A DNA stretch of 62,631 nucleotides, the filler included, from Dicyema japonicum (taxonomy: Eukaryota; Animalia; Dicyemida), in NCBI GenBank assembly GCA_011109175.1. It is 7 parts of 7 records of this genome, joined end to end, with 100 filler letters (N's around TTAATTAATTAA, not from the genome) between each part and the next. Parts side by side here need not be neighbours in the genome. Positions count along the whole stretch, not along the records: positions 27,638 to 49,139 come from RDEW01000136.1; 6 more parts are not named here. One strand, given 5' to 3'. Position 1 is the first letter of the stretch; the number at the start of each line of letters is the position of its first letter. Below the pieces are notes generated by a model, which saw only the letters and a program-made list of their open reading frames with translations, was not told the DNA's origin and ran no database searches. Made by a program: the position numbers and the translations under genes. Shown here piece after piece: positions 27,538-48,890 of the stretch.

Positions 27538-28004
27538 NNNNNNNNNNNNNNNNNNNNNNNNNNNNNNNNNNNNNNNNNNNNTTAATTAATTAANNNNNNN
27601 NNNNNNNNNNNNNNNNNNNNNNNNNNNNNNNNNNNNNAAGAGAACGCCCCCATATAAAGATTCCCTGCTGAGAAGTTAATGTACCAACCTGCCACACGGA
27701 AACTGTATTTGACTTTATTAACTGATAACTTAAAGCGTAGCCTTGAAGATATAACACCGACATTTCTGTGGACAGAAACTAAGAATATTATTAAAAACAC
27801 TACAAGGAATGTTATTGTAACCCTCTGACCAAGCAGACATCATCATAAAATCAATAAACTATCTACTCAACTAAACAAGTGCACCTAAAAGCAGAAAACA
27901 CAATCAACTCTAGCAAGTCAAAAAGCTAAAATCGGAAATCGGTTACTCTAATAATAATAATTAAGCACTACCGCGTTGCCATAAGCACGTAAGATGCCCA
28001 GAAT

Positions 28005-28292
28005 TTCGCTCGTGCAGAACACACACTTTATTTAAATAAATAACAGTTATTATAACTAATCGTAGAGGGAGAACCAAGGAATGCTCTTCACTTCTTTGTT
28101 TTTTTCTTTTTCTTGTGTGTATGTCTTTTTGACTATCCAGTTCCGCAGTAAATCTCCACTGATGACGGCGTCACTCGTCAAGGCCTTTCCGCATCGTAGA
28201 TGCGTGTAACCTTCCACCAGGTGTACAGTAGCGAGAATCGAACCCGTGACCTAAGCCACTTTAGTCCGACACCTAACCACTATGCCTCCCGG
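28005..28292 (-). mobile_element. SINE family A, full-length, with best-preserved tRNA head
   Basis: On the minus strand CCGGGAGGCATAGTGGTTAGG..GGTCACGGGTTCGATTCTCGC (A and B boxes) is followed by the family-A body and the AATAAAGTGTGTGTTCTGC end. Confidence 0.8.
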
Positions 28293-28559
28293 AATCGGTT
28301 ACTCTAAGAAATTTAAAAACTACAAAAATCAGCTAAAAGTGGAGAAATCGACGGACTGGTGAACGAAATATAAAAATAAAAGAACAGGTCAAGGAAGTTC
28401 AAGGTAGTACGTCTACTAATCTTAAACAACCCTTCCAGAGTCACTACGGTTATCGACCAAAAAAATAGTAGTGAATAAAGTAGGTATTGTGTCTTACATT
28501 TCAGAAAACTGTTCATCGTTCAGGAAGTTGAGAATCAGTTTATGATCAAAGGCCATTCT

Positions 28560-29130
28560 TCTAAAACCAAGTAACAGCAGAGGAAACCTCATAGCCAAAC
28601 AAATATTTGTCAAATCAGCATGCCCTGAAGAGATACACGCATAATTATTAAAATATGGACCAACTGAGGTATATTCATCACTGAAATAGTTAGACTGAAC
28701 AAACCATCTTTTCTAGAAGCAACCGTAATCCTGGTACAGAAATCAGACAAAGATTCTCTAAACAACTCCACACAATTATTCTAAACTACGCGAAATTTTA
28801 TTTTTCAATATTCTGAACAAAATTGAGAGAATTTCTCAAAACCAGAGTGGATTTCGAACTGGAAGATCTACACAGATGCAGTATGGGCACATAGGTGTTC
28901 ACTGCCATGTCCCAGATGTATAAAACTAATATTCATGTACTAGAAATTGATTTTTCCCCTGTTTTGACACAGTAAACAGAAATAATTTGTTAATAGTTGT
29001 CGAAAGCTTCTACTAAATGATATCTGGCTATCATAATCTCCATATTTTACAATAACACTTCAACTCCCGCCAATTATGCGATGGAGAATTACTTTTAATC
29101 AGCAATTACTAGAAAATATCAAGAAAGCCC
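28560..29130 (+). mobile_element. LINE RT remnant
   Basis: QSGFRTGRSTQMQ and LEIDFS..FDTVNRNNL motifs; frameshifted. Confidence 0.6.
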
Positions 29131-29525
29131 AAGAACAACCCTAGCAACGATTACCTATCTAAAACAAAAATGTAAGTGCTCACCACTGAAGATCTCGAGA
29201 CATTTCGTAGGAAGGTGCAGAACTTGAAGGGACAGAACAAGATAAATATAATGATTATTATTTCTCGAATGCATTTAATAATAAACTTAGGAAAAGCAGT
29301 AATACTTCCCATTGACAATATTACATTTGTTAATGTAACACCCTTAAATTCATGGTCACATTTGGTGTCTTGGAGATAAAAGACTTCCTTTCTGCATTCA
29401 CATAAACGAGAATGAAAAAAGTTAAAAATTGAGACATAAATTTTAGTCAATTTATATATTTTTTACTTTAAAATATATTATTTAAGAATATTTTCAGAAG
29501 TTTCTTTTTTGATTTCATTAAAATG

Positions 29526-30237
29526 CAGGGCTGTGGAGTAGGTAAAATATATAACGACTCCTCGACTCTGTTCTGACTCCTGTTAATAATTAAAATGATT
29601 CAGACGTTGTAAAAAAAACATTTAGAAAAGAAAATTTAACTATTATTTTTTAGAAATAATATAGCTTCGATCAGATCTTTCTTCATAGAAGCTCGAAGGT
29701 CTGATTTGATAATTTTTAGCCCAGAAAACAGCCTTTCTACGATGACTTGTGTAGGAAGTAGATCAAGAGATCCCTTTTCAAAACAACGAGTTCAATGAGA
29801 TGCATTTAAAATTTTTCAGCATCCATGAATATACTAATTTTATCAGATTGAAAAAACTTATTTAACACTGACTGACTTAGAGATGTAGTATTTTCTAAGG
29901 GGCACATCAAAGGAAAACAAATACCATTGAATGTTTTTATCAACAATATTTAGAATATTTGGATGGAATCTAAATAAATACCTCTTGAGATTGAAATATA
30001 TAATTACGATGTAAAGACATATCAATTTGGGATACAAATAATATGGAAGAAAAATTAATTTAAAATTATTATATCTATTATTAAATTAATTTAAATTAGC
30101 CAAAATTTGACGTGTCATTATCGACAATTAATATTAGAATTTTGTCTTATACTAATAAACAAAATCAACCTTTTTATCACTGACTCCTACTCCAATTCCT
30201 CAAATATAATTTCTTCGACTCCGACTCCACAGCCCTG
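29526..30237. mobile_element. hAT-type MITE, 712 bp
   Basis: TIRs CAGGGCTGTGGAGT(A)GG and CCGACTCCACAGCCCTG; subterminal CGACTC repeats; imperfect TSD TTAAAATG / TTAAATGC. Confidence 0.75.
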
Positions 30238-30689
30238 TTAAATGCATTGTAATGACTTCTTTGCAAACGAGATGGGCAGATGCTTTATATGATAAATCAC
30301 AAATATCGAGGTTTTCCATCAGTTTTTGATTCCCAAAGTGAGGTCGAATTGTATTATGATTCTACAATGTATTCTAACGACAAATCGACTAAAATGAAGC
30401 AAATTATTTATTGTCCCAATAAAACGACTGAACTGTCCGTCTTAAATTACCAACAATGCTAAAACAATCAAAGAGAATGTATTCTTAAAACATGATAACC
30501 ATAATACAGCTATATTTTCTGACAGCTAATTGCTCATTTATGCCTCAGGATTCATTTGTTTAAAGGGAAAGTCCCCAACTAAGGGATATCAGATCTAATG
30601 ACTGTAGAAAATAAAAATAATATTTTTGTTTATAGTTAAAATAAATTACGATTATTAAAATATAATATTATAAATATATTTAAATTTCC

Positions 30690-31060
30690 TGTTCAACGTG
30701 GGGATGCGTGTATTTGTATTGTCAACACCTTCCAAATACCTTCTGGACTACTTTATTCAACACTCACCCACAAGACTACCCAGAATATTTGCCGGTTCCA
30801 TATCTGAGAGTTTCCCTGACTTTCCGCAAGTTCACCCTATATCACTTGAAATCAGCAAATCCTTCCATACAGTCAATGACAACGCATCACACGTGGATGT
30901 CCTCATCAATGAAATCCCATTCCAAACTTTCACAACTTTGAGACAATCCAACCCCACGCGCATTCCTATAATCTGAAAATCAACTGTGGAAATTTTTTAA
31001 TGAGAATAAAAACATTCCTTCCATTATTGAGGAAATCATCGAACCCACACATTATTAATA
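30690..31060 (+). mobile_element. LINE AP-endonuclease remnant
   Basis: RGDACICI.. and NDNASHVDVLINEIP resemble the GG....I and S.IDL motifs of APE domains; decayed. Confidence 0.35.
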
Positions 31061-31559
31061 TTTGTGCCCCACTCAACTTAAACAAGGATTATTTTAACAA
31101 CCACTTTAGTAAATATTTAAATTTTATATTTTTTTATTTTATCCATTTTAATTAAAATACAATTTTGCTCCCATTTTAATAAATTAGTTATTTTCGATAT
31201 ATTTTGCAGCATTTTCAACTCGCTTTACTTTGTCTTTACAACATGTAATATTGTGTAATTTAACTTGGATTGCTATATTATGTAATTTTATTTAATTTTT
31301 ATGTTAACGATGTCTAATCGTTCTCACTTTGAATTCTAAATTTACATATAAAATTTTGTTTACTTTGATCTATGCTTTACGTAATCTATTTTTCTATAAT
31401 GCTTTGTAGATATGGCCTTCACTCATAATTTCATCTCCATGGCAACGATTGGATTGTCGAAAGAACTAATGAGATACAAGATTGCTGTAAACTCACTGTG
31501 GACAAAGGAGAGTAATTATTATAATTTACATTTGCCTGTCTGAACATGAAGAGTATGGA

Positions 31560-32200
31560 CTCTAATATTATGAACACACTCAGTCATTTGGTCAACTCAA
31601 TTCATCATATTTCGAGACTCAACTCTTTTGGCTTTACTGGAAACCAGGTTTTTGCTGAAGACCTCCTAAATGTTGCTAACAAGACAAGTTTGCTTAATTT
31701 TAAACTTTTGGCCAATTTCCATCGTTTCTGGTTGGGGATTACGCCCAGTCCCCTTACTTTAAGGCCAGACCCTCAAAGGATCAACAACCTCAGTCAATTT
31801 CTCTAGCAGACTGTGTGAATATTCTGCAGCATGCCTGTGAGAAGTTTATTAAGAAAAACAAAATGAAGCCATTCAATTTATTATTAAAGGTAGGATATCC
31901 TAAAAGTTGTGTTTGTGGTAATTCTGAGAGTATTTGTTTTGGCTGTTCAAGTGTGAGAGGGGGGTTTGTAACCTTTCCGTTATTGACAATAAAACTTACT
32001 TTGATTCGTTTATTTTGGTTAAGGTAAGTGAAGGACTGCTTGTGAATTTGTTGTTGAATAATATGGAGATTAAATATCTCGAATTTAATCAAACTTTTCC
32101 TGGAAGGGATCCTTTTCTGATTGGAAGTCTGTCCAGAGTTGTTTGAGGTTGGCGCAAGAGGAGGTACAACAAAAGCTGGGAGAGGTTGCTATTAGTTAAT
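31560..32200 (-). mobile_element. LINE post-RT remnant (I/Jockey-like)
   Basis: PPLTLE..LLG(Y)PTFNNKLN followed by GLGVIPNQKRWKL.KSL.LSKL..WFP. Confidence 0.5.
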
Positions 32201-32589
32201 TATAATATTACAATAAAGTTCTGTTCTATTACTATTCTGGGTTACTAAGGGAGACTAGTTGTCGTCAAAATAAGCCTATACAGAAAATCTCACTCGATTT
32301 CTAGTAGATTAGGCAACCATCCCTATAATATCTTCATCTTTAACACTGTGAACTCACAAGATTAGATCAGTCGTTCTTTAGCTACACTCCAAAAATATGA
32401 CAAGTTAAAATTATTTTTTGATTAAAACTAACTCTCCATAACCTTGTATGGTCATCGTCTGCGTTATCCTCAATGGCGCCTAAAGCAGGATTTGTGATTA
32501 TGTTTTCGAAGAATTACAAAAATACTACAATGCATTTTAATGAAGTCAAACAAGAAACTCCTGAAAATATTCTTAAACTATAAGCAGAT

Positions 32590-32770
32590 ATTGTTTATTC
32601 TCTACAAGGCAATAATCAGTCACAATGTTAAGAATTGACGATATGTCGGAAGATCTCAAACAATTCTTAATTATTTCCTTCAGAAAAACAAAATTTCAAG
32701 TTATCAAACTAGGATTCTCAGAATTGTGGGAAAATATTTTTTCAATATTGTTGTTTTCCGACATTGTATT
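32590..32770 (+). mobile_element. hAT/Buster transposase remnant
   Basis: RIDDMSEDLKQFL is the Buster LSNNTVxRRIDDMxED motif. Confidence 0.45.
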
Positions 32771-33614
32771 GAGAAATGATTTAGTCTATATAATGAGTAA
32801 GAAGTGTAATAATTTAAGTATTTGGAAAAGAGGAGACGACGGAGTAGTTCTTACAAAAGAATCTGAAATATAGAGCATCTTGTAAACCTTCACTGAATTC
32901 AAGTCACAAAACAGATTTTTAATAAAAATTAATTATAGCGATTGAGAATTACTGGTTTATATGAGGGGTGGCAGGACTGCGAAAGGGAGAACCCAGAATG
33001 ACACGAAGGTTCTTCCAGAAGATTGCCTCGCCATCATGAGGATAACTCCATTGCCTGTTCAATGCCTGGATGTCATAATGGGTCCTTAGTATGATGAAGT
33101 AAAAGACAGACAAATAGGTAATGTTGTTGAGGAAAAAACGATTAAAGTATTACCTCAATTTATCTGTCATATAAACAATTTTAGTAATTTTTCTCAAATT
33201 AAAAGTAATTCATTTGCTCCACCAAGCTAAAAAGAATAAGGGAGATATTATTAGATATTCCCAATGTAAGTTACGCTCTATCGTATTACACTTATCAAAA
33301 CCCGGATTCATAAAAAAAGTTAACAACTAATAAAGTGTATACAGTTCTATTGGATGTAGGGAGACAAGTCCTCTCATGCACACAAATATACTCGGAACCA
33401 CATAAAACAGTTAATGCAGTTGGAAGCCTCCCAAGAAATGACCAAATGGTGATAAAAAAGCTTAATTGTACATAAGGAGGTAATCCTGGAAGCTTAATTG
33501 TACAATCCTGGAACTATGTTCAAATTGAGACATTTTATAACATGCGGAATAATGTAAATTGAAGAAACCCTTAATAAATTATCCAGTGGGTACACTCAAT
33601 CACAAAGTCCTCCC

Positions 33615-33808
33615 AATGACAGAAAAGTCCACCCAGAACCAACATAAAAGGAGGATGTCCATTCCTGTGAGAACTCCTCCAGTTGAGAGGGAGAGAAAAA
33701 TAATCCTTTTAAATGCCAACCTGGCTCTGGGCGCCACCTGAGACAGGTAAATCACATGACGCCACTCTATTAGAAGAGGGAAGAGGAGGAACGGAAGAAT
33801 AAAAGAAA
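33615..33808. repeat. ~190-bp direct repeat, left copy (partner 35496-35688)
   Basis: AATGACWGAAAAGTCCACCCAGAACC..GGCGCCACCTGAGACAGG..AACGGAAGAATAAAAGAAATC is near-identical at both sites; it is the reverse complement of a family-B-related body. Confidence 0.9.
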
Positions 33809-33809
33809 T

Positions 33810-35420
33810 CGATTCTTGATTCTATATCGCCAAATACACCCGAGACGCTGATATGGAGGAAAATTAAATATTTGAGACGTTGCAATGAAGGCTCTGAGAA
33901 AGTCCTCCACGGACAGGGATGTAGCAACATCGACCCAAATATTTTAATGAAGCACTATGTCGCAATCAGCCATAAAAATTTCTCGAGGGAACACAGAGTC
34001 TACAAAAAGTTGTATCCATCATATGATTTGATTGTCTTTACTACACAAGAAGTTCGAAACGCAATCATGGATGCCAAAAACTCCCGTTCCCGAGGTGCTG
34101 AAAATGTCTCGATGATGGAACTGAAACACCTTGGTGAAAAAGCACCAAATTCCTATCATACGTTTATACTATATCTGTGAACAATAATATGATACCTTCT
34201 ATATGGAAGAAATCCATAATTCTGCCAATTCGGAAGCCAAACAAACCTGCAAACAATCCCTCTTCTTATCGTCCAATTGCATTACTATGTGCAATGTCCC
34301 GAATTTTAGAAAAATTAATCTTAACACGAATCAAAAATATTGTACCAAATCGAGTATTCCAGCATGGATTCCGCGAAAATCATTTTACTACGACTCACTT
34401 AACAAAATTAACTCAATATATATCTGATGGATTCTCTTATCCAAAACCACATAAAAAGACCATAATGGCTTCAATAGAATTGAAGAAAGCATTCGACTCC
34501 GTTTCCCGGACGCTGCTTATAGAGAAAATTTCTAACACTCTTATAAATCCAAACATTAAAAGATGGCTGTCGAACTTTTTAAGTGGAAGAAGAGGACAAG
34601 TGATGTCAGATAACAGAAAATCTAAATCCCGTTTATTACCGAATGGTGTCCCTCATGGTTCACCTCTCTCTCCCCTGCTCTTCAACCTGTACACCAATGA
34701 CCTTCCCACCAATGACGATCCCGATACATTAATACTCTCATACGCAGATGACATTGTTCTTTCGACGAGAGACTCTAACTATGAGAAGGCAGGGATAAAA
34801 CTTCAAAGTTATATTAGTATGCTGGAACATTGGCTCACATCAAATCGACTGGAAGTTTCTACAGGAAAGTCGTTTATAACAATTTTCTCTACATATAGAA
34901 GATCATTATACTCTCCCAAAATGAAATTCCTATGAATAAGTCTCCAACAATACTAGGATTAAAGTTAAATACTCTCCTGACATTCGGCCAACATGTCAAT
35001 GACGTTATTACCAAAGTCAGGAGGAGGACCAACATATTGAAAATTTTGTCCCAATCACCAATCGGGCACAACACCTTCTTACTACAGAAAATTTACAGAC
35101 AATACATACTGCCAGTAATCGAATATGCTTGTCCCTCCTGGAGCTCGATGATTTCTGAATCGTCGTCTCAAAAATTAAAAGCCGCACAACTTGCTGCCTT
35201 GAAAATAATAAATAAGAAAACTGTGGATAACGTATTGAATGTTAAAGAACATTTAAGGTGAAAAGTGAAGTCATTTCTACAGTGGGCAACAAAAACCGGC
35301 TGTCCGCTTTCACTCTCTATATCTGACTATCTAGAAAATGCGGGAAATCTATGGAGAATGAGACCATCCCCGTTTCTACCAATTCTGTTGGATCTTCGAG
35401 GAACCCGAACGAGAGCCAGA
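33810..35420 (+). mobile_element. I/Jockey-group LINE reverse transcriptase, 5'-truncated, few frameshifts
   Basis: SYRPIALLC, QHGFR, KAFDSV, GVPHGSPLSPLLFNLY, YADD and ILGLKLNTLLTF motifs in ORFs 33872-34180, 34177-34935 and 34932-35261. Confidence 0.9.
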
Positions 35421-35495
35421 ACCCGGAAAACCGGGATCATTTAGTCAGTAGTTATCTTTTGACTTTTTCTAATCCGGTGATCTTGGGGTAAAAAA

Positions 35496-35688
35496 ATGAC
35501 TGAAAAGTCCACCCAGAACCAACATAAAAGAAGGATGTCCATTCCTGTGAGAACTCCTCCAGTTGAGAAAAAGAGAAAAATAATCCTTTTAAATGCCAAC
35601 CTGGCTCTGGGCGCCACCTGAGACAGGTAAATCACATGACGCCACTCTATTAGAAGGGAGGGAAGGAACGGAAGAATAAAAGAAATCT
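35496..35688. repeat. ~190-bp direct repeat, right copy
   Basis: See 33615-33808; both copies end at the same base (..AAAGAAATC). Confidence 0.9.
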
Positions 35689-37312
35689 TTAATCAAGTAC
35701 CCACATAGGTACCACACGGTTGATAACTTTCATAATAAAAAACATTAAAAATAAAAATAATAATAAAATATCATTTATATTTGGATATAATTAATTTTCT
35801 CTTACTGTCAGACCCAACAAGTGAGACATTGGCCTTCCCTTTCAGTTCTGTTTGTACAATATTCACTACTCTGACGATATTAGGGATAATCTCATCTTTA
35901 CTACGAAACTATTGTTATTATTTACATTACTTTGACTTTCTTTGGGAGTATAAGCATCTCTGATGACTTTCCTTTGAGCACTGTCCTTAGCATAGATCTA
36001 CACATAATTAATACATCCTTCTCGGCAGCAAAACAAGATATACTACATGTTTTGTATGCAGAATCACTACAAAGTGTTCTAATAAAGGAGGGGATATTAT
36101 ATTTTATGACTATTAATAAAATAAATTATACCACCAGACATTAAATTTAGCATTTAAATTTAAATTTCGAAAAAAAATAAAAATTATAAAATTAATTAGT
36201 TTGTTACCCACCGCTTTACGGATATGTAGTAGGCCGGCTGCCATCAAACGTCCAGTTGAGAGAGTTTTGGAATTCCACAGGTTTCTTAGAATTGTTAATT
36301 GCCTTGATTAGCGAAAGATTTTATTGATAACGTCACCAAGTTGGTTAGGTGAGGGAAAGCAAAAAACTCTGAATTATCTTGTACGGAATTGGTATGAGAT
36401 TTGCACGGGAATTAACGCAAGCCTACATTTCGTGTTTTTGAAGTTACGCAAGCCCATATTTCGTGTTTTTTTAAGTTTTTTGTCAGACATAGCAAGACCA
36501 GCAGAGAGTACAGTAGTTTAGAGTTGTTCAGTAATTGTTTGTTAAGTTTTAGGCTGTTTTTTGAGTCCAATTTGACTCGAGAAACGACACGGGAAGCGGT
36601 AAATTTTCATCTGGCCTTCAGGATAACATGGCTTAGTGGGACGAAATGGAAGAAGATTAGACCAACTATTTTTGGAGTTTTAGTTGCAGGAGAACTTTTT
36701 CAAAAATCTTCATTTAGATTGAACATTGAACCGTCCACAATCAAAAGTACCTCTTCCCACAGAACCTCAATTTCTCTCGAGAAATCCTTTATTATCGAGC
36801 TGGCTCTAACAAAATTTTTAAAATTCACATTTTTTATAAACAATTTTAAATAAAATTACAAGAATATAGTTGATGACAAATAAAGAAAACAATCACACAT
36901 ATTATTGCATATATTACCTTCTGGTAGTGAAGGTGAAGATAGTACCCGGTCAGGGAGGATTATCACAATATTAAAGTGAAGACATTCTTGTCGTACTGAT
37001 ATGAATTGTCACGGAATTCTTCATGAGACAAAAGAGAGGTTCCTACCTTAGGTAAGTGAAAATTCTAATTCTACGGATAGTTAATTCAAATACATTTGCG
37101 ACTATCATAAAGTTAATCTTACAACAGTAAAAAAGAAACATAAAATTTTAATGAAAATAAATAATTTATAAATTAAATTGTTTTTCAAAAATATTTTTTA
37201 GAAAATATGAGTAAATATAAGTCAATATAGTTTGAAAAATTAATTATTTATAATTATTTTGTTAATTAAATTATTTAATAAATCTTAAAAATTAAATAAT
37301 TTGGTTTCTTGT

Positions 37313-37938
37313 ATGCAGGATTCTCAGGATTTGGAAAATTTGTCGAAAATAATGCCATTCGCAATCAGTAATATAATTTCAACAAATTAGGTGGTCCTCA
37401 GTTAGATATAGGTCCTCCAGTCCGAATGACAAGACAGAAGTTCAAAATCAAACCAACAATAATTACAAGACATCCGATGAGTATTGTTAAGGATGATTTG
37501 AAATTTGGTAACCAAACACGTGCTCGACAGGTACTTCATAATCATAAGACAGATGTTCTGGCATAAACGATTACAGAAATTCTACGGATCTGACGACTCC
37601 ATCAGAGAAAGTCTTAAATCGTTCCTTCCTAAGCCATTTGTACCTACAAATCTTAGTTTGCTTGCATTTTTATAAAAAAGTGAATACAACTCATGTCAGT
37701 GCCCTTCAAAGCATGGTTCATTCTCTTCATGAGGAATACTATCATTTTGGCGGGCAAAAAAATTCGAATTTAAATTTGGATCCTTGTGTGCTAGTGGACC
37801 CATATCAACCACTAATAAATGAAGTACTGATGGTTATTTTAATAGAACTTTGACTTGTCTGACGAAGTTTTGGACTCTCAAATAGAATATATTAATGGAT
37901 TACGATGTCAATTGGCTGAATTGAGGCGGGAATTGTGA
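37313..37938 (+). CDS. MBD2/3: MBD2/3-family NuRD subunit, 177 aa, 5 exons; apparently lacks the N-terminal methyl-CpG-binding domain
   Basis: Exons 37313-37367, 37391-37530, 37553-37655, 37681-37823 and 37846-37938 (introns 23, 22, 25 and 22 nt, GT-AG) give a stop-free protein. PPVRMT..KPTIITRHP..VKDD; RQMFWHKRLQ; ALQSMVHSLH; DP.V.VD..QPL and a C-terminal coiled coil correspond to MBD2/3 PVRQTASIFKQPVT..HP, RQLFWEKRL, LLSAIASALH, NP.V.LN..QPL and the p66-binding helix. Confidence 0.85.
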
Positions 37939-39193
37939 TTGATGATTTTACTTTATTAATTTTATTAGTAATTTTAAGGCTTTAGTTAATTTATTGAGCT
38001 CATTTCCTTGCAAATCGTCAGAGGAAATACGTTCTTAGGGAGTAGCGTTAAATGTGCGATTTTATATTTTTATGGAGAATATAGCCTCAGGTTTTTGTGA
38101 CACATGGGGTTTGAGTTAAGGAACAGTTCTCCGCCTCTAAGCTACATTTAACTAGAAAAGTTAACATCAATCAAGACAACGTATTTATGCGTAGATGCAA
38201 TGTCTCGTTATCTCAATAAAAAAAAAGTACCATCCTCACACCCACACAGTAAACTTTTAAAAGAGTATCACAAATATCATTCTTCCAAACAGTTGTAAAT
38301 ACGTTAGCATGAACCATATATCTCTGCAGGTCAAATCTATCTAATGTTCAAAGAATTTTCATTTGTTTTCAAATACTCTTAGATAGATAATGACCATAAT
38401 GATCCCAGTTCACAGCCGATATGTCGCATTTGAGGAAGACGTCTGGCTCCAATTTTTATAACGAGTTCCTCCGGGAGATGATCTCTTCCTATATCCCACA
38501 TTATTCTCTGTTTTTCCACATAGGTGATTTGATGTGGTGACACGAGGAAGACCACAAACTTATCTCCTTCATAGTTATAGAAGTGATTCGTGTCTTCCGT
38601 CGTCAGAACCTCAATCTCAAGATCGCTTAGATAAGAGTTTCAAACGTCGTCCGCCCCGGATTGTTTTATAGTTTATACCACCAGGATAGATATCAAACTT
38701 CTCTAGAAGAACTCAGCAATCTCCGTATAACAATTCCTTATGTCTTTCGAATATAGACCCCAACACTAATCCACAACATCGAACTACAATAGATATGAAC
38801 TCGCAATGCAACGTCGAGATGATGTTGGAGTTACGTACTTGTAAATCATCTCGTACCAGCTACCACAGCATCCTCCATAGTATATCCACATAGTAATATT
38901 ATTTCATAATGTAAGTATCAGCCTTCTTCATTTTTGCTCGAACGTCGACGTTGGCAGTTGACGCAAGTGGTGCCAGTTCATGCCTTTCCCTAGGGATGGG
39001 GCATCCTCAGACAATTGGCTCAAACTTTTTATACGTTCTAAATATTTTGATAGTATATGGGGGCAATTCTTTCAAAATTTTCAATACTCAGTTATTAACT
39101 GGTTAATATAATTATTCCACCTAATATGCGAAAATAGTGAATGAACCCAATATTATAATTAACCCAAATAACCGATATTAATTAGTGAAGTAA

Positions 39194-40109
39194 CTATAAT
39201 TGAGAATATTTTCTGTTGTATTTTAACAAGAAAATAGCAGTAACAATCAATGATGCTGTAGCAATTACACAAACAGTTATTATATATTTGTTTTCTAAAT
39301 TTAACTTACTGAATGCATGAGAGTTGACAGTATTTCTTAAATAACTATGAGTTGTAGTTGTCTTTATTTTTGTCTTTAAAGCAATTGAAGTTAATTTTTT
39401 GTTTTTAAATTCTACAAATTTCCTTTTAGAATAGTACTGTTTATATAACTTTGAGTTGTAGTTGTCTTTATTTTTGTATTTAAATGGGGTGTTGATTTTA
39501 ATCTGTTATTTCTTTTGAAATCACATCCGAGATCTAAATGTAGGAATTTATGAGTACCATTTCCAGTAAATAATGTATAATTATCTGTTTTTAATATTTG
39601 CATTTTCATATCTTTTATTTTTATTTTTTCACATTCAGAATAAATACAACTATTTCACTGCAGTTATAATAACCGTTAGTTGAAATGAGTATATTTTCAA
39701 CTCCACGACCAGCATTAGTGGAAATTCATGTTAATAGCAAAGAAACAGAACATATATTAGTTGATCTTAAATAATCAACCATTATTGAAAAATATATATC
39801 ATTTTTCTTCCATTTAAGGATAAAATCAAATCGGCCGAATTTTCCGAAATAAAAAATTGCGTCATTTAAATTTTCATATATTATCTTCATTAAATATAAT
39901 GTGATTACAATATTATTAATTTTATATTCAATGTCAATTATTCCAATAAACAATGCTACAATCCGATCATCCTCTAATGCACCCCACATTGGCACATTAT
40001 TATACAACTTATTAAATGTCTTAATATTCTTCACTAGTGATTTATTGGTTACCATACACATATATATTACTATTATTAATTTATTTTGTAAACCTAGTAA
40101 TTGGAGCAT
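39194..40109 (-). pseudogene. LAMP-like type I membrane protein, paralog 1 (signal peptide, LAMP-like domain, Thr-rich stalk, TM, tail ending YSQL); one stop and one frameshift
   Basis: Introns 40070-40093 (24 nt), 39885-39908 (24 nt) and 39412-39437 (26 nt). Features: MLQLLVIYMCMV.., VALFIGIIDIEY, GYYNCS, KIKIKDMKMQI, GCDFK, KTTTT x2, TM YIITVCVIATASLIVTAIFLL, tail KYNRKYSQL*. TGA at 39726 and a frameshift near 39640. Confidence 0.6.
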
Positions 40110-40261
40110 TTTCACAGCAATTATTCTAATTATGAATATTTAAATAAAAAATAAAAAGTAATTTTAAATTTAATAAACTTATTAATTTTTAATACTTACT
40201 TTTTATTGTTGAACGAGTGCCGGACATAAGGCCAAATTGTCCATATTTCGGGAGGAAAAAT

Positions 40262-40582
40262 AGTCGCGTGGCGCCATGTGGTGCTTCGTGGCTAATTGGT
40301 TGAAGTTTCTGTTTTGTTCGTCTGTTATTCCTCTCTTTTCTTAATAGAGTGCCGTCATGTGATCCACCTGTCTAGGTGACGCCCAGTGCCATGATGGCAC
40401 GAAAAAGGATCATTTGCTCTTCCCCACTCCACTGGAGGGGTTTCCACAACTGCATGTAATGGACGTCTTACCTTTTATGGAGATTCCGGATGACTCTGTT
40501 TCTGTAGAAGTGAAGACTGGATACACTTAATTAGTTGTTTACTTTAAATTCTTTCTCGGTGTATCCGGGGTTAATAATAAAT
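40262..40582 (+). mobile_element. SINE family B, full-length
   Basis: Colinear with 11201-11523. Confidence 0.75.
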
Positions 40583-41329: not shown

Positions 41330-42400
41330 CTGAACCAAAACTAATTAAGTGGGTTTGTATTCATCGTGTAGGGTCATTTTATGAGACACCACATGTCTCT
41401 ACTTCGTTTGGACCCCAAAAATTACATCACATTTTCCATAAGTGATGTAATAATTTTTCTATCTTTCTGACTTTCAGGTCGTAATCCTCTTCGATATTAG
41501 ATTTTAAGTCCAGTCCATATGCCAATTTAATCGCAAATCTTCTGGACTTTTCCAATTTTTTGACAAAGACATCACTTTCTTTTGTTCTAAACCATCCTTG
41601 ATAACCATATATCAAGAATGGTTCAACACACGCCGAATACACAAAAGAAAAGTTTCAGGCTCCAAATGAAATCGAATTAAAGATTTCAACATTCCTGTAG
41701 CTTTCTTTCTTCGTGTTTTAATATGTTCCTTGAAAGATCCTCTTCGGTCTATCAACAATCCGAGATACTTCAATGTTTCAGAGATTTTATATCCCAGTAT
41801 TCACACATTGATTAATATTTTTTCTTTTACTTGCAATCCAAGTGACTGTTGTTTTTTCCCTCGATAGAGTCAACCCATTGTTTTGGCACCACTTTCCAAT
41901 CTTAGTAATATGGGATTCCACCCTTTTCCATGAAATTTGTTTATTCATGCTTGAATCAAGCACAAGAATGTCATCAGCATAAATAATCATTTGACTATTT
42001 ACGCTCTCTGTTTTCGGCAAATCTCTCATTACGCAATTGAAGAGTAGCGGGCTGAGAATTGAACCCTGTGGAACTCCTCTTCGCAATTCAATTTTCTTTG
42101 AAATTAAATTTCCAACACGTATATATGACTTTCTTTTTGAAAGAAAGTTTTCTATCCATAATAACGCAGTTTTCCCAATTTCTGCTTTTGACAACGTATC
42201 AACAAGTCCAAAGTGCCAAACACTGTCAAACGCTTTTGTTATATCCAAACATGCTATTGTAAGAAATTCCTTTTATTTCGTGAAATTTCGATTGCAGATC
42301 TTAGCTCTTTAAAGCAATCTCCAGTCCCTTTTTTATGCCGAAATCCCAGTTGATTATCGAAATTTTTTAACAGATAACATGATTTATTCGCAAAACCCAA
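41330..42400 (-). mobile_element. I/Jockey-like LINE RT 3' fragment nested in the Ginger element
   Basis: DITKAFDSVWH, GVPQGSILSPLLFN, YADD and EPFLIYG motifs; C-terminal cysteine-motif remnant. Confidence 0.85.
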
Positions 42401-44980: not shown

Positions 44981-45470
44981 ATGTTCCAATTACTAGGTAT
45001 ATAATAATAAATAATATTACCAGTATATTCATGTATAATCATTTGTAAATCAACAATGAGTGAAATTATAACTTCAGTAATATTGGATAATGCAGTACCA
45101 ATGTGGGTTGTTAGAGAGGATGCTCGGACTATAGTATTATTTAAAGGAAAAATTGTTGTCTCGTACAAAATTAATAATACTGTAATCACATTATATTACT
45201 AAAAAGATTTTACATGAAAATTTTAATGATGCAACATTTGATTTTAAAAAATTTGAATGTGGTAAAGTAATGTTTTCTTGGACGAAAAATGGCATAAAAA
45301 TAATATTTACTACCAAATATCTTGCTCATATTAATTTATTATCAGTTCGTTTGGAATTATCAGTATTCAAGCATAAATGTAAAGAAAATGGTTTATTAAT
45401 TTAGATCATGAAAAATTTGTTGATTTTCTGGAGAAATTCAAAAATAACAGTTATTATAAATGTAGCAAAT
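44981..45470 (+). pseudogene. LAMP-like paralog 2, 5' part, interrupted by a LINE endonuclease fragment
   Basis: Introns 44997-45023 (27 nt), 45182-45206 (25 nt) and 45379-45404 (26 nt). Frame is open: MFQLLVYSCIIICKS..VPMWVVREDARTIVLFKGKIVVSYKINNT|ILHENFNDATF..NNSYYKCSK. First two intron positions match paralog 1. Confidence 0.65.
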
Positions 45471-45996
45471 GTGTTATGTATTTCCCTCCATATGGAATGT
45501 CACTATAAGTGAGTCTGGATAAGTCCAACAAGAATCCTTTCGGGCAAGAGGACGGACGAGGGACATATATGTTAGCAATTTTGAGAGTACTCGATCCGTT
45601 TGATATTGAAATTCCGGAGATTTCCGTGGTCCCATTGTTAGTTAGCGACTTAAGTTCAGCGGATATGTCAGAATAACGAAGGTTCTTTCTGATGATGGTA
45701 AGAAGGCCTCCACCGAGTGGGTTCGGGCGATCTAGGCGGATGCAGTCGAAACCTGGAAAATGAGGAGTAGTCGCGGACTCAGTCAACTTGCTTTCTTGAA
45801 GCAGGATCACGTCAATGTTTTGGTTGTTTGTGAAGGATCGTAATTCGAGAATTTTGCTCTTTAATTCCGTTGATGTTAATCTGCAGAATTGAAAGTTGGA
45901 GACCTGGGTTGAGCTCGATGTCGCCAGAGAGTAGTAGAAGGATCCCATTGAGAGTTGATGGGAGAAGAGTTGAAGGAAGCCGTACGAAGGAACCAA
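45470..45996 (-). mobile_element. I/Jockey-group LINE AP endonuclease fragment
   Basis: IDVILLQESKL, FPGFDCIRLDRP..GGGLL and IANIYVP motifs. Confidence 0.85.
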
Positions 45997-46759
45997 CTTG
46001 GGATTTAAATTAATTATTTTAATATAACTAAAATATAAAACATGTGTAAATTACTAGGACGTTCAACAACAACTAATTTGACAAAACTAGTCCAATTCAT
46101 CTCTGACGGCCTTGAAAACCTCAAATCCACACAAAGAACCGTGGTGTATAGAAGGCTTTTGACTCACTATCCCGGAAAATAAATTCACTTGAAGCACTTC
46201 CCGACTAGTCTCGATCTTCAAAATATTTATACGAGAAATGAATGGACTTCAGATTTCACATGCTTAAAAAATCACGGTTCAATAAATTGGTTGTAAATAG
46301 AATTCAAAATAGGATTATTTCCGATTTTCCATATTCCAGATAGACAGTTGTATACATTAGTCTTCTTTCTATATTTTGTTATATCTAGGGCGATTTTTTG
46401 ACTTTAAAAATTCAAAATTGTGTGAATGGAACAAGAAAATCAGATATTTTAGCAGTATCACCTGTGAAATACTACTAAAATGATTAGCAGTTAGTTTGAA
46501 ATGTTTATTAGACAAAAGATCAAATAAATAGCTGTTGTCAGAAAATTCGTGAGTTGAAAATTCACCAGGATGTTTTCTAATAACAGTCATAACCTTTTTA
46601 ATGACCTTCCTGATACGAATGTGGCATAACAGATGACACGTTAGTACTTTATTTCAAAAACTCTAAAAATTAATTAATAAAAATGTTGACTTTATATTTT
46701 TATTTAAGCACTTCACGAGAGCCATACTATTTATAGCCCCGCATGTGCTGCAAAAGAAA

Positions 46760-48890
46760 CAAGGTTAGATGTCATCCTTTTCCATGCTCCCCTGTTTCTA
46801 GCCAAGGCTCCCATGTTGTCCAGGTCGTCGGCATTTATTAGATTTTTTTGATATTACCAGGCCTTTTTGTAAGACTATTGGCAGTGTTGTTCTTGGTCTT
46901 CCACGATAGCGGCCTTCTTGGCTAACATAGTATGTTTCCATAGATATGTTAGGTGGGGATGTTAATTCCATCCTCAGCACGTGTCCGAAGAGCTTCCATC
47001 GGGATTCCAGTACTTCTAAACTGATGGGTCTAGTGCGGCATCTCTTATATAAAGCATTCCTCGATATTCTCGTAGGCCAAGTAGTTCTTGTTATTTTTTC
47101 TCAGCTGACATCAGTGGAATGAGTTTAGTTTTTCCATTTCCGCTGATGAGTCGCCCAAATTCCAGCGTTATATAAAAGTACCGGTTTTATAAATGAGTCG
47201 TATAATATGATTCTCATTTTCGTGTCGATGCCTTTTTGATTGAGCCATAGATTCTTCAGTTTATATAACGCAGCATTGGCTAGAGTTTTCCTACGTAAAA
47301 TATCTTCGCTATCTCCCAAAAGTGAACCGAGTTTCTTTACTTGTCGCCATTTCTCTTCGGCCATTTCTCTTGATTCCTCGGCCGTGATTGGTATCTTAAG
47401 GAGTCTTGGCCTTCCATCAAATGAGTGGATTTCTATGGTTTTAATGTTGAAAAGCTTCTCAAAGTAGCCGCGATGGCTTCAGTTTGTTTTTGGTGTTCAG
47501 TATCTGCTTACCGTTCTCGTCTTTTATGGTTAGTCGACTTCTGTTTGTTCGCCGCAGCAAACGGGCAGCGACGTACACCTGTGCGTTGTCTTTCACTTTG
47601 TTTACTTCTTCTATACAGGAGCTATTTCTTCTATGAAAAGCTTTTTGTTCAGATCCTTTATTTTTCTTCTGACACGTTGCCTTTCGTTTTGAAGGGTTTT
47701 TATCGTATTAGCGTCAGTGGCATTTTATTTTCTCATATTTATTTCTTTTAAACTTTTCGCAAGCTCAGGAACATCTGGATGAATAGTTTTACTATTCTCT
47801 CTTTTGCCAAGACATGCTTCAGCAGCTTCATTGATGGTGTCCTTCTGTGCGTTTCCAGGCGTCTTCTTACGCGGTATCCACCAATACGTCCTGCATATGA
47901 GTCTGAATGTATTGTTGAAATCTCTCAGTAGTCTCCGGTTGGGAAATCAGCCTTTCAGTCTCGTAGTCGCCTTTGATTTTCTCAAATTCGTGATTGCATT
48001 CTTGTATTTGATGGCATGTTTTTTCAGGATGAAGGTCGCAATAACCATTTTGTGGTCGCTGACAGTCGTCGAGCCTTCATTTGAACGTGCGTTTACTAGA
48101 AGGTGTTTGTCTTTAGCCCGGCATATGACATAATCTATTTGGTTGTATATTGGGACCAGCTTTCCATCTGAGTTCCTTCGCTTCCCCATCCACGTAGTTT
48201 TGTGGCAGGCAGGATGCGTAAATGCAGTATTGCATAGGAAAAGGTTGTGTGCCATACAAAAGTTACCAATTATTGTCCCGGGTAGATTTCTTATTCACGT
48301 CCTTGTTCTCCCAAGAAACTTCATCCCGATTTTTGCATTCAAATCCCCAGCAATGAGTATTAGTGATGACGACTCATATTCGTTGTACGTCCGTAACAGT
48401 GTTGAATAGAAGTCGTCTAGTTCTGTCGGATCTTTCGCTACTCTCCCGCAGTGTGGCGCATAAACATTTACAATTGTCAGAAAGCTCTTCGAAGGAGGTA
48501 AGTCGTTTAGTCGGATTTGTATAACACAGATCCTGTCATTCACACTCCATATACGGTGGACTGCACTTGTCAACTTTGAGTGGATGGCAAATCCAATCCA
48601 TAATATTTTGAGTCGCTCGGCTGACATATAATTCGATATTCGCCATAGTTCTCATCAAGGCTACAAGTAACTTTCGTCTCTTGTAGGCACCCAATAGATA
48701 CGTCGTATCTCTCCAAGTTGTCACTGAGAATCTTCCTCGACCAGGTCGTCGATAAGCCTCTAGCATTGAACGTAAGGACCTTTAGACGAGATGCATTCCT
48801 TTGTATCCCTTGTCTTTTTGACATTTTTCTCAATTGCGATCCAATCAAGAAACGAGGCACGTCACAACCTCACCAAAAAAACTTGACTTT
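46760..48890 (-). mobile_element. RTE-like LINE retaining APE, linker and C-terminus but missing the RT core
   Basis: APE (LTFNARGL, IGCLQETK, VNVYAPH, AGDLNAKIG, NQIDYVI, SDHKMV) and linker join directly near 47375 to KWRQVKKLGSLLG..KPVLLYNAGIW..YRGRPRTTLP. Confidence 0.85.

Follow-up and report, generated by a model that had tools for sequence, protein, structure and literature searches.

The window is a 62,631-nucleotide stretch of Dicyema japonicum DNA, of which one 21.5-kb piece, at positions 27638-49139 (RDEW01000136.1), was studied. This piece has 34.2% G+C, contains few genes, and abounds in LINE reverse-transcriptase fragments. The D. japonicum genome as a whole (67.5 Mb, 36.7% G+C) has 5,012 genes and is 49% repeats, LINE copies being numerous among them (PMC6736024); for comparison, the G+C content of Henneguya salminicola is 29%. 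Within the piece, positions 36500-38500 were read and the three frames of the + strand translated. Five coding blocks lie on this strand at 37313-37938, across which the frame changes four times, each change being bounded by GT and AG. When joined, the blocks form a coding sequence of 534 nt (exons counted by script) that encodes 177 aa and closes with a single terminal TGA. The features of the locus are the following:

37053-37312, + strand: AT-rich stretch of ~14% G+C, closed in three frames; almost no read variants at 36987-37304
37313-37367, + strand: exon 1, beginning with the ATG; 18 codons and 1 base; no similarity noted
37368-37390, + strand: intron 1, 23 nt, GTAATA..TTAG; also present in DNA contigs
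37391-37530, + strand: exon 2, MBDa; opening conserved block in the disordered region of MBD2/3, with C-terminal ..RQ
37531-37552, + strand: intron 2, 22 nt, GTACTT..ACAG; its excision links ..RQ with MFWHKRLQ
37553-37655, + strand: exon 3, FW-x-KRLQ motif, then the beginning of the MBD_C region
37656-37680, + strand: intron 3, 25 nt, GTTTGC..AAAG
37681-37823, + strand: exon 4, MBD_C core
37824-37845, + strand: intron 4, 22 nt, GTACTG..ATAG
37846-37938, + strand: exon 5, amphipathic heptad helix of 30 aa, then the TGA stop

The four introns (23, 22, 25 and 22 nt) are all of the GT..AG type and none has a length divisible by three, so that retention of any one of them would break the frame. The presumed start codon of the 177-aa frame is the ATG at 37313, and a further in-frame ATG is found within exon 1 at 37352. 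In the literature consulted, the myxobolid myxozoans and the dicyemids are the only animals in which introns of less than 30 bp are widespread. Median intron length is 22-27 bp in myxobolids and 27 bp in Dicyema sp., D. japonicum being likewise short, and in both groups the splice signals are pared down to "GTa" and "AG" (PMC13644364; PMC6543705). The mean intron of D. japonicum has been reported as 38 bp (PMC6736024). The four introns of 22-25 nt described here fit this dicyemid/myxobolid class, and they provide a worked example in which such introns are validated by the conserved motif that their removal restores.

MBD2/3 is the oldest animal reader of CpG methylation and also a structural subunit of the NuRD complex. 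The membership of the predicted protein in this family was assessed by searching the exons singly, and the scores given here are therefore single-exon scores; exon 1 (18 residues) falls below the 20-residue minimum of the Pfam scan. Exon 2 matches Pfam MBDa (PF16564) over profile positions 17-59 of 71 (E 2.5e-4, 21.6 bits; gathering score 27), and exon 4 matches MBD_C (PF14048) over positions 21-67 of 94 (E 5.3e-3, 17.9 bits; gathering score 27). Both scores lie under the gathering thresholds because a single exon carries only part of its domain. MBDa and MBD_C are the two families that form the post-MBD part of MBD2/3, and here they occur collinearly and in the right order. Stop-free segments elsewhere in this DNA, 299 in all (149 on the + strand and 150 on the - strand), served as an empirical null. 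None of these matched MBD, MBDa or MBD_C, the best chance E-values being 0.0017-0.004, and the collinear pair is thus, on profile comparison, not due to chance. Exons 3 and 5, which are too short, gave no Pfam match on their own.

Comparison with known structures points in the same direction. In the PDB, exon 2 matches human MBD2 alone, at residues 237-275 (7ao8 chain C), C-terminal of the MBD. In this alignment, exon 2 keeps the equivalents of human MBD2 P244, R246, T248, F252, K253, H262 and P263; those of P255, V256 and P278 are not retained. At the junction of exons 2 and 3, removal of intron 2 rebuilds the motif RQ-x-FW-x-KRLQ, which keeps Q, W, R and L in the spacing of human Q280, W283, R286 and L287. 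The region that contacts the deacetylase core is therefore present, as seen in the MBDa match and in the retained Arg-Leu pair equivalent to R286 and L287. Residues P244, R246, T248, P255, V256, P278, Q280, W283, R286, L287 and L290 of human MBD2 are conserved across animals (PMC4381075), and R286 and L287 together are needed by human MBD2 for the recruitment of RbAp48/HDAC2/MTA2 (Desai et al., PMC4381075).

PDB searches with exons 3 and 4 returned nothing meaningful, and those with exon 5 returned only weak matches to keratin coiled coils. Exon 5 occupies the position at which MBD2/3 proteins carry their GATAD2/p66-binding coiled coil. This coiled coil binds GATAD2 (p66) and thereby CHD4. Judged by position and heptad pattern, the exon 5 helix is likely to be its counterpart. 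Exon 2 had no match among 1.84 billion protein representatives, a result that, for a 46-aa query, excludes close relatives and not distant ones. In the ESM Atlas, exons 2 and 4 retrieved only unnamed short clusters (scores 0.79-0.89), an uninformative outcome. Taken as a set, the sequence comparisons support the assignment of the gene as an MBD2/3-family homologue. The locus had been singled out by a sequence-only reading, which described an intact 177-aa spliced product aligning only with the part of MBD2/3 past the MBD. The five exons, the 534-nt coding sequence, the MBDa and MBD_C matches and the alignment to MBD2 residues 237-275 bear out that description.

Canonical MBD2/3 proteins carry an N-terminal MBD (PF01429), whereas none is detectable in the Dicyema gene. 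An MBD would end right at the start of the predicted protein, which lies ~20 residues ahead of the MBDa alignment. A Pfam scan for MBD, MBDa and MBD_C, proposed in the same reading as a check, matched MBDa in exon 2 and MBD_C in exon 4, and found no PF01429 in exons 2-5. Upstream, PF01429 was likewise absent from 149 stop-free segments of at least 20 aa on the + strand at 27638-37400 (E<=1), where the only real match was to RVT_1 (E 5e-31), and from 150 stop-free segments of at least 26 aa on the - strand at 27638-40139. A regular-expression screen for MBD core motifs produced just two chance ORFs, both far upstream. No MBD-coding exon is thus detectable within 9.7 kb upstream, the range of a search that exons of fewer than 20 codons or strongly diverged MBD pieces would escape. 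These results, along with the constraint on the gene described below, agree with the earlier proposal of an MBD2/3 homologue that has lost its MBD.

Two weak matches to other families emerged from the same scans. One + strand segment at 27638-37400 matched zf-SAP30 (E 0.004), which is chance level for 149 segments, and this segment was not found among ten Cys-rich segments. One - strand segment matched SAP25 (E 0.012), again at chance level for ~150 segments.

The same reading had also suggested that a faint LPSG..E...RSG remnant near 36914-36955 might be a decayed MBD start, and this suggestion did not survive. A Pfam scan at E<=10 of the "LPSG..RSG" candidate (36908-36976) gave nothing, and its frame is closed by a stop. 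Correcting 36700-37060 to the read majority (a G inserted behind 36882, a C behind 36986, and four substitutions) produced no MBD-like frame, and the candidate remained closed.

The sequence directly upstream of the ATG is very AT-rich, as had been noted, with 14.4% G+C measured over the 250 nt at 37063-37312 and stops in all three frames. AT-rich and closed as it is, this segment leaves a compact gene of tiny introns no place for an MBD exon. A donor-like AG/GTAAGT occurs at 37052/37053; the sequences at 37318 and 37327 resemble acceptors and have a pyrimidine tract. The earlier observation that the consensus donor at 37052 would splice with an in-frame TAG is confirmed for the sole phase that fits exon 1. 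Because the TAG precedes the donor, an exon there could be at most non-coding 5' UTR. The stretch 37053-37312 is one of two things: promoter plus 5' UTR, or a non-coding intron in the 5' UTR that would span 37052/37053 to 37318 or 37327. Use of that intron would move the start of translation to the next ATG in frame, at 37352, again with no MBD in the product. Should 37053-37318 be a 5' UTR intron, the sequence at 36990-37052 would contain two short upstream ORFs, with ATGs at ~37002 and ~37024, one of which stops at the TAG adjoining the donor.

Intactness and variation were examined with contigs from four DNA runs (one sample, one study, 2019), the only public runs found to contain the stretch, aligned to 35650-38450. 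The contigs show no splice joints across the gene and contain its introns; the runs are therefore DNA, which places the short introns in the genome itself. Within the 626-nt gene, only two substitutions were found, 37488 T>G (Val->Val) and 37612 T>C (Ser->Ser), both synonymous and at third positions. Among the indels listed, none falls inside 37313-37938, and the frame switches are consequently not assembly artefacts. The flanks (2175 nt) contain 32 substitutions and at least 12 indels, that is, at least 44 differences. From these, 12.7 differences would be expected in the gene against the two observed (Poisson P ~3e-4); the low-variation block extends over the non-coding 36987-37312, and the low variation may be partly regional. 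The pattern points to purifying selection on the gene rather than to a decaying remnant. With a predicted disordered region and coiled coil present, no MBD detectable, and a frame that is intact and constrained, the gene falls within the MBD-less subclass of the family.

Several irregularities in the contigs were also recorded. Those of three runs break at 37723/37755, at an A7 run in exon 4, which one run spans unchanged, and a Nextera adaptor lies at one contig end. The set of four runs agrees with the D. japonicum project (PMC6736024), in which four read accessions are listed consecutively. The reads carry one extra base after each of positions 36124, 36169, 36570, 36593, 36635, 36688, 36712, 36882, 36986, 38088, 38220 and 38311. 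At several of these sites, each of the four runs has the extra base at full depth, and none of the indels listed is coding; the sites seem to be single-base deletions in the assembly or strain differences. Just past the stop codon, at ~37990-38093, contig word depth rises ~20-fold in all four DNA runs, a sign of a short repeat of high copy number in what is likely the 3' UTR or flanking DNA.

On the combined evidence, the locus probably contains an intact and functional gene for an MBD2/3-family protein without an MBD, predicted to be a bridging subunit of a NuRD-type complex. Other explanations can be put forward. MBD-coding 5' exons might exist more than 9.7 kb away, or be very short or too diverged, in which case the 177-aa frame would be the 3' part of a longer gene or an alternative-promoter isoform resembling mouse MBD3C. 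An upstream exon could make use of the strong donor-like AG/GTAAGT at 37052 and the acceptor-like sites with their pyrimidine tract at 37318 and 37327, upstream LINE insertions (RVT_1) could have lengthened an intron before exon 1, and the Pfam scan is blind to segments shorter than 20 aa and to very weak MBD matches. However, the TAG in the only phase matching exon 1 would render such an exon non-coding, and not one of the 149 upstream + strand segments matched MBD at E<=1. A coding intron of more than 9.7 kb would, moreover, be exceptional in a species whose mean intron is 38 bp (PMC6736024), and this explanation is considered quite unlikely. The gene could also be an MBD-less paralogue, comparable to MBD3L, beside a canonical MBD-bearing MBD2/3 elsewhere in a genome whose owner retains 5mC reading. 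Mammals do have MBD-less paralogues next to canonical genes (PMC4381075), and the search covered the 21.5-kb piece alone. Against this stand the strongly reduced gene set of D. japonicum, with its 5,012 genes (PMC6736024), and a local CpG o/e of 0.85 that bears no methylation footprint, such that a second, canonical gene appears unlikely.

A further possibility is that the locus is a young pseudogene, a 5'-truncated and silent MBD2/3 remnant whose frame is open by chance. Among the public runs searched, no RNA run contains the stretch, and the gene sits in repeat-rich DNA, with LINE fragments on both sides and the high-copy repeat just past its stop. Yet four pairs of splice sites and a frame of 177 codons are all intact, and the functionally critical residues are kept in the predicted protein. 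The reads likewise show only synonymous variants in the gene and no indel among those listed, against at least 44 differences in the flanks. A chance survival of this kind is very improbable.

MBD2/3 proteins without an MBD are already known from nematodes, from Trichoplax, and as mammalian MBD3L, and the Dicyema gene is one more. Nematode MBD2/3 proteins generally have no bona fide MBD (PMC2000911). C. elegans MBD-2, which is without an MBD, retains the IDR and the coiled coil, is a NuRD subunit through the coiled coil, and shows NuRD-independent binding to repressive chromatin as well (PMC12923846). An MBD is likewise missing from Trichoplax MBD2/3 and from human MBD3L1/2; the MBD3L proteins still bind NuRD, for which MBD3L1/2 compete with MBD2/3 (PMC4381075). 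The statement in the sequence-only reading that C. elegans MBD-2 and the MBD3L proteins keep NuRD-binding regions without an MBD is in agreement with this literature (PMC12923846; PMC4381075).

The predicted Dicyema protein resembles C. elegans MBD-2, a small protein of a lineage without 5mC or with doubtful 5mC, in being without a detectable MBD, with a disordered region and a predicted C-terminal coiled coil. The host lineages differ, and the role as a NuRD scaffold, demonstrated for MBD-2 through its coiled coil, is a prediction for the dicyemid gene. Like Trichoplax adhaerens MBD2/3 and human MBD3L1/MBD3L2, the Dicyema gene is MBD-less and retains the predicted NuRD-binding regions. MBD3L genes, however, are mammal-specific paralogues next to canonical genes. 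With the canonical MBD2/3 proteins of human, planarian and Drosophila, the gene shares MBDa, a putative MBD_C and the core-contact residues P/R/T...W/R/L. Planarian and fly MBD2/3 retain the MBD despite 5mC-poor genomes (PMC12923846).

By analogy with these relatives, the 177-aa product is presumed to be expressed and to bind NuRD. Its disordered region would bind the HDAC/MTA/RBBP deacetylase core through the kept Arg-Leu contact, and its C-terminal helix would bind GATAD2 (p66) and, through it, CHD3/4. The protein would in this way form the bridge of a NuRD-type complex, which may be targeted to chromatin by factors other than 5mC reading, as with C. elegans MBD-2.

Whether the loss of the reader domain accompanies a loss of DNA methylation can be approached through base composition. 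Over 27638-49139, CpG o/e is 0.85, compared with 0.90 for GpC and 0.78 for TpA; there is no depletion of CpG, LINE copies included, and CpG o/e is 0.76-0.97 in three LINE fragments. The piece therefore has no footprint of germline CpG methylation. This fits an absence of 5mC weakly, because invertebrate methylation is mostly gene-body and the piece is nearly gene-free.

In the literature searched, Dicyema is nowhere connected with DNA methylation or with DNMT1. No MBD, DNMT or NuRD terms occur in the supplements to the D. japonicum genome paper (PMC6736024), and no MBD or NuRD term occurs in the main text of another paper on dicyemids (PMC6543705). Myxosporea have been reported to be without DNMTs, TETs and any MBD1/2/3 (PMC7826176), a conclusion of loss that was later disputed (PMC11905887).

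An independent loss of the MBD is plausible, since the host is neither nematode nor mammal. The loss would be a separate one given that the host lineage, an animal with ultra-short introns, differs from the nematodes. More tentatively, and with somewhat less than an even chance, this gene could be the sole MBD2/3 of a dicyemid. Dicyemids would then have lost the entire 5mC system, DNMT1/3 as well as the reader domain, in an event separate from those in nematodes, placozoans and flies, and would have retained MBD2/3 only for its role as a NuRD scaffold.

Whenever a lineage loses the reader domain and keeps the rest of the protein, the result is a natural separation-of-function experiment, and it shows that the protein is indispensable as a scaffold rather than as a reader of 5mC. 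To the nematode, placozoan and MBD3L examples, the Dicyema gene would add another independent case, from a very strongly reduced parasite with ~5,000 genes. The gene also offers a simple marker for asking whether dicyemids have lost DNA methylation.

The 21.5-kb piece consists mostly of repeats and has one host gene. Closest to the gene, a stop-free frame of 145 codons on the + strand at 36416-36850 is unusual at 30% G+C and has no Pfam match. Read contigs are fragmented here, with many variants and with loose ends at 36713, 36749 and 36761, and the segment looks like a multi-copy repeat rather than a gene. Further upstream, the reverse-transcriptase fragment (RVT_1, E 5e-31) extends on the + strand through stop-free frames at 33803-34177, 34138-34932 and 34899-35258, and its nearest relatives in the protein collections have only 47% identity. 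Direct repeats of 196 nt, 94% identical to each other, bracket it at 33615-33810 and 35495-35687, and a third copy, inverted and 72% identical, lies at 40274-40492. On the - strand, further non-LTR retrotransposon fragments occupy 41430-42272 and 45457-48869; by eye, the first region contains reverse-transcriptase motifs at 41790-42272 and the second an N-terminus resembling that of an AP endonuclease near 48573-48869.
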